Below are positions 58,601 through 61,600 of a DNA stretch of 64,000 nt, in pieces. Source of the stretch: Macrostomum lignano (Eukaryota); assembly GCA_002269645.1 (NCBI GenBank), contig NIVC01001690.1, positions 134,537 through 198,536 of the forward strand, in the 5' to 3' direction. The translations under genes and the position numbers were made by a program. The first letter of the stretch is position 1. Every line of letters begins with the position of its first letter. The notes under the pieces were generated by a model. The model made no database searches. It had not been told where the DNA came from and was given only the letters and a program-made list of their open reading frames with translations.

Positions 58601-61600
58601 GGCAGAGTGGGGAGAGGGGCAGAGTGGGGTGAGGGGCAGAGTGCAGGAGAGGTGCAGAGTGGAGAGAGGGGCAGAGTGGGGTGAGGGGCAGAGTGGCGGA
58701 GAGGGGCAAAGTGGGGTGAGGGGGAACGGGCCAAATAAAAGTGCAGCCGGAACTCACAGTGCTCTTCGTCGCTGTTGTCCCTGCAATCCTTCACTCCGTT
58801 GCACTCTTGCTGTTTCTTATTGTAGCAGCGCTTCTTGTGTTTGCACCTCGCTAAGCCTTTAGAGGCGTCGCATTCAACATCCTTACCTTGAAGAGGAGTG
58901 AATATGAGGCAGTATGTTGTTGTTCAATTAATTATTCACCTTTCTAATGAAAATTGTGACTCACAATCACTCTCATCCGTTCCGTCTCTGCAGTCTTTTG
59001 CACCGTCGCATTCCTGCTCCATTGTGAAGCACTTCATCTTGTTTTTGCATAATTTGCCCTTGGGATCTGGACAGCTGGACAGCTCTTTGCCTGCGAAAGA
59101 TAAAAGTTGTGCGTTAGTCTGTCTGTCTGTCTGTCTGTCTGTCTGTCTGTCTGTCTGTCTGTCTGTCTGTCTGTCTGTCTGTCTGTCTGTCTGTCTGTCT
59201 GTCTGTCTGTCTGTCTGTCTGTCTGTCTGTCTGTCTGTCTGTCTGTCTGTCTGTCTGTCTGTCTGTCTGTCTGTCTGTCTGTCTGTCTGTCTGTCTGTGT
59301 GTCTGTCTGTGTGTCTGTCTGTCTGTCTGACTGTCTGTCTGTCTGTCTGTCTGTCTGCCTGTCTGTCTGTCTCTCTGTCTGAGCTTAACCCACAGTTCTC
59401 CTCGTCCGACTCGTCAACGCAGTCCCTCAGCGCCAGGCCAGTGCCACCGTCGCACTGGAAGGCTTTCGGAATGCACTCCTTGTTTTTGCAGATGAAATCG
59501 TCGGGCTGACATTCTCCTGCGGTTGACATTTGGTTGCACACATCAATCAATGGAATATACTGCTCTAGATGGGATTTGGCTGCACTTTCAGCGGCGGGGA
59601 AACTTACGAACAAATCTCCACTTCATGTGGAATCCTTTTGCCGTGATGCCCTTCGGATCAGTTGTACTTTTGAACACGACTCGCACGTTTTCGCCGCTGG
59701 AGACGAATTTTTCGGGAATTTCGCGACCGTTGCACAGCGTCTTGTCCTGCGGTGGGCGAAGGTTACTGGCTTGTTTTGCAGAGCGGCATGGAGAGGGGAC
59801 TGCAGAGAGAAGTGAGTGAGGGAAGAGATGAAGGGAGATCAGGTGAGATGAAGGTAGATTAGAGTGAGATGAAATGAGATTAGGGTGAGATGGAGGGAGA
59901 TCAGGTAGAGATGAAGGGAGATCAGCGAGAGATGAAGGCAGATCAGGTAGAGATGAAGGGAGATCAGGTAGAGATGTATGGAGATCAGGAGAATAAGAAA
60001 CAATGAGCCTCGAGTATCAAAAGGTGAAAGCAGACATTTCTGCAGACTCACCAGAGCGTCCCCGCTGAAGAACTTCAGGTGCGTGTCATCGCAGGGTGGC
60101 TTGTCTCGGGGCATCTCGTAGGCTGCAAAGCTGAACTCGATGCGGCTAGAGGGCACGTCTGTCAGGCCTTTGATGTTCCACTCGCACTTGAAGTTGCGCG
60201 GATACTCGCACTTGGCGTAGGTCGAGTGCGAGAGCAGCTCGCCAGAAGTCTGCGATATCACGGGCGTACCGCAGCTGGCAGGGGCTGAGGGCGGGGGCAC
60301 GGGAGGTGACTTTTGGTGTCACGGCCGCTTGAGCAGCTGATTTCGGAAATCTTAAAAATCTTAAACTCAAATTCAAAGCAGGCCATTCACGGGAAATCCC
60401 CGAGAGTGTATCGCGCTCCGTTATCGAAAATCTTAAAAGTACATCGGGCACTGACCAAGAGAATTATCTAGAGTACAATAAAAGCTACATCCAGAGAGTA
60501 CAACAGGCCACACTTGGGAAACCATTTCCCCACAGAGTACACCAGACCACACTAGGGCAATACCCCCACAGAATACACCAGATCACACTAGGGCAACCCC
60601 CTCCCCCACCCCCACAGAGTACAACAGGCCACACTAGGGCAACCCCCAGAGTACAACAGGCCACACTAGGGCAACCCCCAGAGTACAACAGGCCACACTA
60701 GGGCAACCCCACCCCCACAGAGTACAACAGGCCACACTAGGGCAACCCCACCCCCACAGAGTACAACAGGCCACACTAGGGCAACCCCCAGAGTACACCA
60801 GACCACGCTAGGGCAACCCCCAGAGTACACCAGACCACACTAGGGCAACCCCCAGAGTACACCAGACCACACTAGGGCAACCCCCAGAGTACACCAGACC
60901 ACACTAGGGCAACCCCCAGAGTACACCAGACCACACTAGGGCAACCCCCAGAGTACACCAGACCACACTAGGGCAACCCCCAGAGTACACCAGACCACAC
61001 TAGGGCAACCGCCAGAGTACACCAGACCACCCTAGGGCAACCGCCAGAGTACAACAGACCACACTAGGGCAACCGCCAGAGTACACCAGACCACCCTAGG
61101 GCAACCGCCAGAGTACACCAGACCACACTAGGGCAACCGCCAGAGTACACCAGGCCACACTAGGGCAACCGCCAGAGTACACCAGACCACCCTAGGGCAA
61201 CCGCCAGAGTACAACAGACCACACTAGGGCAACCCCCAGAGTACACTATGATAGATTGTTGAACAAAGAAACAGATTCGTAACAAAAAGCACTTACGAGG
61301 TTTGTTTGTCCCGGCGCCAGCAGCAGCCACCAGAGACAGAATTCCGGCAAGCACTCCGAAGACAAGGAAGTGCTTTACTTGCATTGTGCCGTAATCCAAG
61401 TGTCCTACCAGAGTTCAAACTCAGTGATCGGTGTGTGTGTACCGGTTTAGTATGAAAGCAGCAATTATTTTATTAAGTAAGAGTTAGTTTTCTAAATCGA
61501 AGGTTTTGAGGGAGAGTTTATTTGCACTGAATTATCTTTTCTAGGTAGAAACAATTGATTGGTTGATTTACGATGCTGTGCACGGGACTCCCGCTGGGAC

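Follow-up and report, generated by a model that had tools for sequence, protein, structure and literature searches.

Why should one LDLa module differ strongly between two gene copies that are elsewhere nearly the same? This question is raised by a 64,000-nucleotide (nt) stretch of Macrostomum lignano DNA (assembly Mlig_3_7, GCA_002269645.1; contig NIVC01001690.1, matched at 100% identity over 49.7 kilobases), which we refer to as the window. Self-BLAST and MAFFT alignment revealed a single duplicated block in the window, present in two copies that lie in the same orientation and 32 kilobases (kb) apart. Each block contains a complete 12-exon gene on the minus strand, encoding a signal peptide (exon 1, E1), a CUB domain (E2-E3), and nine LDLa modules, one per exon (E4-E12). 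An earlier note on this DNA had proposed that the module encoded by exon 5 is under diversifying selection as a ligand-contact module or, alternatively, was altered by gene conversion from a third paralogue. In our assessment, the exon-5 excess is somewhat more probably a short mosaic tract of gene-conversion type, whose copying history is separate from that of its surroundings (rough probability 0.55), than anything else, and it is not proven adaptive evolution. On this best reading, the tract is a rather unremarkable consequence of gene duplication in a genome that is repeat-rich and recently polyploid. The two blocks are as follows.

23490-30930, minus strand: duplicated block copy 1 (alpha paralogue), 7.4 kb, whole gene with an intact product of 536 amino acids
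55640-61680, minus strand: duplicated block copy 2 (beta paralogue), 6.0 kb, whole gene

Exon 5 and the copies that carry it

The fifth exon, which occupies 58965-59090 in copy 2 and 26869-26994 in copy 1 on the minus strand, is a phase 1-1 exon with AG/GT splice sites and codes for the second LDLa module; copy 2 carries sequence type B and copy 1 sequence type A. The two versions differ at 13 of 126 nt (offsets 20, 23, 24, 32, 46, 47, 52, 53, 57, 61, 90, 91, and 92) and at 9 of 42 residues (S>P, T>D, S>G, N>K, H>N, L>M, R>K, V>A, and E>K), while every cysteine and acidic residue is kept. The coordinates given in the earlier note were exact, and its counts of changed nucleotides and residues and the retention of the cysteine and core acidic residues are confirmed. 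In the unique sequence around exon 5, from E2 to E6, 9 of 1041 nt are mismatched (0.86%), and at this background the probability of finding 13 or more differences in 126 nt is 1 × 10−10; at a pessimistic block-wide background of 2.7%, the excess still has a probability of 3 × 10−5. The adjoining introns show almost none of this divergence: the 38 nt of unique upstream intron are identical, and the 78-nt downstream intron has a single mismatch. The divergence of exon 5 is real and statistically strong, and it takes the form looked for under gene conversion or mosaicism, namely a sharp contiguous tract in which both silent and replacement divergence are unlike the flanks.

Exon-by-exon mismatch counts bore out the description of exon 6 as identical and of the other exons as 0-3 nt apart. 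The exons are listed below, using for E4 the acceptor site of the annotated gene models.

E1, copy 1 30576-30663, copy 2 61297-61384, minus strand: 3 nt differ
E2, copy 1 28826-29058, copy 2 60052-60284, minus strand: 2 nt differ
E3, copy 1 27752-27890, copy 2 59608-59746, minus strand: 0 nt differ
E4, copy 1 27538-27660, copy 2 59394-59516, minus strand: 2 nt differ
E5, copy 1 26869-26994, copy 2 58965-59090, minus strand: 13 nt differ
E6, copy 1 26662-26790, copy 2 58758-58886, minus strand: 0 nt differ
E7, copy 1 25849-25968, copy 2 58350-58469, minus strand: 3 nt differ
E8, copy 1 25635-25763, copy 2 58136-58264, minus strand: 1 nt differs
E9, copy 1 25281-25406, copy 2 57516-57641, minus strand: 2 nt differ
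E10, copy 1 24783-24905, copy 2 56869-56991, minus strand: 0 nt differ
E11, copy 1 24559-24699, copy 2 56646-56785, minus strand: 1-nt frameshift in copy 2 as assembled
E12, copy 1 24343-24476, copy 2 56418-56551, minus strand: 2 nt differ

To place the two exon-5 versions in a wider copy family, we drew on protein database searches, which returned one NCBI model (P0001) and six UniProt models from the older ML2 assembly. We use the labels P0002, P0003, and P0121-P0124 for the ML2 protein models, and the haplotype comparison spans 9 proteins. These fall into an alpha group (copy 1, P0123, and P0124) and a beta group (copy 2, which equals P0122, together with P0121, P0002, and P0003). Three of the beta models (P0122, P0002, and P0003) are fused in the ML2 annotation to one upstream neighbour gene, and this neighbour has exons just upstream of copy 2 in the window; because the beta copies share it, alpha and beta are positional paralogues present in several subgenome copies. 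The Mlig_3_7 assembly is described as holding approximately three paralogous subgenomes, with a single-nucleotide divergence of 1.1% in coding sequence and 2.2% overall (PMC10733133), which matches the background of about 1% between copies 1 and 2. Four exon-5 haplotypes were found among the family members:

Haplotype A: copy 1
Haplotype D: P0123 and P0124
Haplotype C: P0121, P0002, and P0003
Haplotype B: copy 2 and P0122

There are four haplotypes and yet just two known core types, among at least six copies in one inbred line, so this looks like a two-state paralogue difference rather than hypervariability. Set against the haplotypes, the 13 differences divide into three parts.

Copy 2 59029-59067, copy 1 26933-26971, minus strand: core tract (offsets 23-61), 39 nt holding 9 nt differences, 6 residue changes, and 2 silent changes
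Copy 2 59070, copy 1 26974, minus strand: P218S site, Ser in copy 1 only and Pro in all other copies
Copy 2 58998-59000, copy 1 26902-26904, minus strand: three adjacent bases, GTGGAA>GCAAAA (V241A, E242K), in the DGxxDC calcium loop

The A241-K242 pair is confined to copy 2/P0122, and all other copies read VE. The 6-residue core block, by contrast, is fixed between alpha and beta in every known M. lignano copy; since the same two versions mark alpha and beta throughout, the block predates the subgenome split. The core is approximately 23% diverged against about 1% around it, and the probability of 9 or more differences in 39 nt at 0.86% is 5 × 10−11.

Exon 5 is not the only place where the copies differ, and the description of them as otherwise near-identical holds for the exons and most introns but not for intron 9 (25% mismatches plus indels), the 5′ flank (13%), intron 8 (7.7%), and intron 1 (7.5%). 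Introns 3, 4, 5, and 10 are 0-1.3% diverged. Three of these high-divergence patches can be delimited:

24906-25280 (copy 1), minus strand: intron 9
30664-30930 (copy 1), minus strand: 5′ flank
Copy 1 30523-30593, copy 2 approximately 61248-61314, minus strand: E1 patch in the pairwise alignment, comprising the 3′ end of exon 1 and the first ~70 nt of intron 1

Codons 24 and 28 of the E1 patch (D24A and Q28K) distinguish alpha from beta, as the exon-5 core does. In fact, all coding differences that are diagnostic of alpha versus beta lie in dense patches: 3 nt within 12 in E1, 9 within 39 in E5, and 2 adjacent nt in codon 402 of E9. The lineage-specific differences (V83, K209, S218, N317, D330, and P510) are instead isolated single-base changes. 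Outside the patches, approximately 490 codons carry no alpha/beta-diagnostic replacement at all, so the branch separating alpha from beta has essentially zero length there.

Copying history, selection, or mutation

Because 14 changes in three tiny patches would have to be placed on a branch of near-zero length, ordinary point substitution, selected or not, fits poorly. The most likely origin of the core tract, judged from this distribution, would be non-reciprocal recombination between repeated LDLa-coding DNA, and it could have taken one of two forms. In the first, the tract would be an island spared when gene conversion or re-duplication brought the remainder of the two copies into agreement, with the homogenisation of older duplicates falling shortly before the subgenome split. 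In the second, a diverged LDLa module that can no longer be seen would have served as the source of the tract. The other 4 nt would then stem from two small later events on this subgenome, which gave P218S in copy 1 and the 3-base VE>AK change in copy 2. The scaffold of six cysteines and an acidic calcium cage would have been kept as purifying selection removed alternatives, and conservation of these residues is expected under any of the explanations considered here.

Adaptive divergence offers a different account, in which positive selection after duplication, for a new or split ligand specificity, acted on the N-terminal lobe and then on the calcium loop, producing a run of replacements, some of them by two-base mutations, with the silent changes as by-products. 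To compare rates of replacement (dN) and silent (dS) substitution, we performed Nei-Gojobori counting on copy 1 against copy 2, with the following results.

Exon 5: dN 0.100, dS 0.149, dN/dS (omega) 0.67
14-codon core: dN 0.28, dS 0.33, omega 0.84
Rest of gene: dN 0.0078, dS 0.021, omega 0.38

The same counting gives three silent changes in exon 5 (AAA>AAG, TGT>TGC, and the third base of GTG>GCA), one more than the two clearly silent changes counted earlier. Silent changes occupy 3 of 22 sites in exon 5 against 6 of 292 elsewhere (Fisher p = 0.019), so that dS is raised about 7-fold in the exon (p = 0.019) and 16-fold in the core (p = 0.016). The ratio of replacement to silent changes, 10:3 in exon 5, does not differ from the 9:6 of the rest of the gene (p = 0.43). 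The signature of positive selection, dN/dS above 1 with silent divergence not raised, is therefore not what exon 5 displays in this low-power comparison of only 13 changes. The earlier note had called for per-exon dN/dS and had named a ratio across alleles not above 1 as a result that would refute its proposal, and exon 5 is not above 1 between the two copies; with local ratios below 1, raised silent sites, a replacement-to-silent ratio like that elsewhere, and only two known core types, diversifying selection on exon 5 is not supported.

Several observations do favour adaptive divergence. If the gene-wide dS of 0.021 is taken as the yardstick, dN in exon 5 appears accelerated approximately 5-fold, and that in the core approximately 13-fold. 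Ten of the 13 changes alter the protein while the cysteine and acidic scaffold is wholly kept. Replacements after the subgenome split have occurred in exon 5 of both copies here (P218S in one, V241A/E242K in the other), and E242K reverses the charge at a position next to the acidic pocket. Of the three silent changes, two adjoin replacement changes, as by-products would. However, the post-split enrichment of exon 5 is not significant, with 2 events against about 0.9 expected (P approximately 0.2, by hand estimate). All six consecutive codons 226-231 of the core are changed, and this includes silent changes in the codons of the conserved Lys228 and Cys231. A branch that left no isolated diagnostic replacement in the other 490 codons is too short for some six selected substitutions in 12 codons. 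Finally, the E1 patch, equally dense, continues into non-coding intron 1, which means that dense patches are not tied to protein sequence. We consider adaptive divergence unlikely as the source of the tract, while recognizing that dN/dS alone cannot settle selection against the other readings.

A neutral mutational burst would explain the clustering by one or a few error-prone repair events, such as break repair synthesis, a template switch, or a multi-base mutation shower, possibly linked to a (GTCT)n array and tolerated in the weakly constrained N-terminal lobe. Nine of the 13 differences do fall in runs of adjacent bases, above chance across the exon (P = 0.003), adjacent double differences occur in introns too, and the tract sits in the least conserved part of the module. 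The (GTCT)n array lies 26 nt upstream of exon 5 and differs in length between the copies (265-505 nt). Inside the core, however, the adjacency of changes is that of random placement at such a density (P = 0.26), as expected of replaced or old sequence. The spectrum shows no strand coordination or single signature (4 C>A, 3 A>G, 3 T>C, and 3 G>A). Proximity to the microsatellite was rejected as a sufficient cause, as exon 4 ends only 12 nt from the same array, nearer than exon 5, and with 2 differences is not hypermutated. Nor does the region around the tract hold a local template longer than chance 7-mers. All told, a burst of this kind seems to us quite unlikely.

The template search bears on the mosaic tract as well, and with it we gather the results that weigh against that reading. 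Around the tract, neither an inverted nor a direct local template was found beyond 7-10-mers; the 7-mers are about as frequent as chance predicts (hand estimate), and the two 10-mers lie in conserved module sequence and not at variable sites. A blastn-short search with both exon-5 versions and their 42-nt cores found no donor in the window or in the 7.4 kb beyond it, yielding chance-level 8-12-mers only, and the M. lignano database proteins contain no intermediate paralogue. We also performed hmmsearch with a profile of the A and B exon-5 versions against a library of 1.84 billion cluster-representative proteins; in the 150 best matches, identity of an outside module to either core never exceeded 8/17, so that the search supplied neither a donor nor an outgroup that would show the ancestral version. 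Homogenising sequences once they are approximately 20% diverged is mechanistically hard. In the protein-level alignment there are no incompatible site pairs, and so no visible conversion after the split. The silent-site excess comprises only three changes, and if the two that adjoin replacements arose with them as single two-base mutations, one independent silent event is left (P = 0.37).

Gene conversion from a third paralogue, the alternative raised in the earlier note, accordingly fares in two ways: a tract with a separate copying history fits best, but no third paralogue carrying either exon-5 type was found in the window, in the 7.4 kb beyond it, or among database proteins. One candidate donor lead lies within the gene itself. 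Between Cys2 and Cys3, the B tract (TGCAAAAACAAG-ATG-AAGTGC) is 17/18 identical to module E4, with a one-codon gap, and the A tract is 12/18 identical to it over the same part. At the 12 assessable variable sites, module E4 agrees with B 8 times and with A 3 times, against scores of 2-6 for the other sister modules, a lead that is not significant after multiple testing across the eight modules compared. The 12-mer TGCAAAAACAAG, which version B and module E4 have in common, proved unexceptional, with exact runs of 12 nt occurring in 3 of 44 module pairs. The 13 substitutions show no GC bias of the kind left by GC-biased conversion (6 weak-to-strong and 7 strong-to-weak, counted by hand). A metagenome scan with a conserved 28-mer of exon 5 gave no hits.

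It could also be asked whether an assembly error, in PacBio data from a polyploid genome, has created one of the exon-5 versions or even the arrangement in two copies. In places, Mlig_3_7 is known to give a wrong picture of copy number (PMC10733133). Within this locus, exon 11 of copy 2 probably contains a homopolymer error, and the NCBI gene model is chimeric between the copies. Errors of PacBio sequencing, however, are indels and not clustered in-frame substitutions. Both cores recur in independent ML2 models (P0122 equals copy 2 at exon 5, and P0123/P0124 carry the copy-1 core), the window contains no Ns, the two copies have different flanks, and beta copies adjoin the same upstream gene in several models. 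We regard an artefact as very improbable.

Module position, gene architecture, and annotation

Both exon-5 versions are bona fide LDLa modules, keeping six cysteines, DG..DC, and DGTDESD, and module 2 aligns to the LDLa modules of solved LRP2, VLDLR, LDLR, and CD320 structures. These alignments start at approximately residue 13-20 of the module, and between Cys1 and Cys3 the nine modules have little in common beyond the cysteines; taken together, these features suggest an N-terminal-lobe position for the core, where the fold is least constrained. The core tract is outside the acidic pocket that handles calcium and lysine docking, as that pocket is placed in LDLR structures, a placement that likewise counts against diversifying selection on a ligand-contact module. 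Its net charge is roughly unchanged, with three Lys and one Arg in A and five Lys and one Asp in B, and the changed residues, on a variable module surface, may or may not alter ligand choice. The VE>AK change of copy 2 lies elsewhere, in the D-G-x-x-D-C loop. In LDLR modules, calcium receives a backbone carbonyl from the first x of this loop, and the loop lies at the edge of the acidic pocket where ligand lysines dock. By analogy, the Glu>Lys flip could plausibly alter binding.

A further possibility is that the 39-nt island was kept different by selection against homogenisation and then extended by VE>AK, with the two copies splitting ligand specificities through module 2. We think this reading doubtful; selection that merely maintains the island is compatible with a mosaic origin of the tract.

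The whole protein is rich in LDLa modules. Pfam PF00057 (LDLa) matches 9 stretches of the copy 1 product at 188.6 bits (cutoff 24.1), and PF00431 (CUB) matches at E = 2.2 × 10−9 and 38 bits (cutoff 21.4) over profile positions 1-109 of 110. The CUB domain also matches the cubilin CUB domains in structure 3kq4 (E = 6 × 10−11). All LDLa exons, E4-E12, are phase 1-1, with the splice falling within the codon of the sixth Cys. As for membership of the LDLR/VLDLR/LRP receptors, PF00057 was the sole family in a Pfam scan of the whole protein at E ≤ 0.01, and the scan detected no YWTD/EGF precursor region. The reading frame ends directly after module 9, so nothing downstream is able to anchor the protein in the membrane, and the only strongly hydrophobic stretch, as judged by eye and not by a transmembrane predictor, is the N-terminal signal peptide. 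In protein database searches, the best matches outside Macrostomum were CD320, LDLR, and VLDLR at approximately 30% identity, and no relative above 30% identity was found in the protein databases outside M. lignano; as far as databases show, the gene appears to be lineage-restricted.

The terminal module differs from the rest. Exon 12 (24343-24476 and 56418-56551) encodes only five cysteines, the third Cys position reading CKNNQFIK, and a stop codon follows directly after the final Cys, leaving a degenerate module with an unpaired cysteine. In exon 11, copy 2 has a C4 run at 56759-56762 in place of the C5 run at 24672-24676 of copy 1, causing a frameshift and a TGA a few codons on. P0122, which comes from the older assembly and has all copy-2 markers, is intact at exon 11, and the frameshift is probably a PacBio homopolymer error or a polymorphism. 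Skipping of exon 11 would keep the frame, because all LDLa exons are phase 1-1.

Neither gene copy is annotated separately in the NCBI record. The NCBI model PAA65036.1 (BOX15_Mlig021446g1) spans 37 kb (window 24343-61384) and is a chimera in which exons 1-8 of copy 2 are joined to exons 9-12 of copy 1. A full-text search returned nothing on expression or function of Mlig021446, and the gene ID is absent from the supplementary tables of those M. lignano expression papers available as text.

Micro- and minisatellite arrays fill every long intron and the 3′ flank in both copies. Their copy numbers differ strongly between the two, the (GTCT)n array measuring 505 nt in one and 265 nt in the other, and the arrays make up most of the difference in length between 7.4 and 6.0 kb. 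In copy 1 they are placed as follows.

23658-24162, 24931-25175, 25494-25630, 26011-26627, 27021-27525, 27963-28763, and 29269-30516: satellite arrays, copy 1

The spacer between the copies is 24.7 kb long and contains retroelement reading frames at 34537-38205 (minus strand) and 39335-42394 (plus strand). These include a long terminal repeat (LTR)-type set with zinc knuckle, reverse transcriptase, and integrase, and a long interspersed nuclear element (LINE)-type open reading frame of 1019 amino acids with endonuclease and reverse transcriptase; much of the distance separating the duplicates is probably due to such insertions. Downstream of copy 1, at 14343-21724 on the plus strand, is a gene whose public record annotation lists ABHD16_N and alpha/beta-hydrolase Pfam hits. 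The neighbour upstream of copy 2 has exons at 62715-62958 and past the end of the window, and its product contains ..LEEKMKREAEIETKRLNE.

Comparison with known systems

If the mosaic reading is true, this locus is a clean small example of how genes with repeated modules in a recent polyploid can gain patchy divergence that mimics positive selection, and it calls for caution in dN/dS scans in Macrostomum, where reproduction-related genes reportedly evolve fast. If selection does maintain the island, the locus would be an uncomplicated system in which to study how ligand choice is tuned by a single LDLa module, with natural variants at hand in the two versions of a 12-residue surface stretch and the charge flip in the calcium loop. 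It would then also be a small, tractable neopolyploid case of sub- or neofunctionalisation at the level of a module, one whose role might be reproductive or secretory. Under both readings, the locus shows up faults in the annotation of Mlig_3_7, in the form of a chimeric gene model and a probable homopolymer frameshift.

The nine canonical class A modules of the M. lignano protein resemble those of LDLR, VLDLR, LRP2, and CD320, and its combination of CUB and LDLa resembles LRP3/10/12. Unlike the LDLR family, however, it ends after module 9 with no YWTD/EGF region detected, and the similarity is a generic one between modules and not orthology. With reproductive, immune, and allorecognition genes, it shares the traits of being secreted, lineage-restricted, and duplicated, with a cluster of replacements on a binding-type module. 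It differs from them in that dN/dS of exon 5 is not above 1, only two core types are known, and silent sites are raised.

The closest parallels may lie in human RHD/RHCE and OPN1LW/OPN1MW, paralogue pairs that have been homogenised by gene conversion with small islands of difference left. There, as here, neighbouring duplicates are approximately 99% identical, and a short exon segment stands many-fold above background within sharp boundaries. For the human pairs there are documented conversion tracts, donors, and population data, and function backs selection on the islands, whereas the M. lignano island measures only 39-73 nt and is known from sequence comparison, with no conversion visible after the split. 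Exon 5 is best explained as a new instance of this known pattern, a paralogue mosaic produced by non-reciprocal recombination, in an uncharacterised flatworm gene.

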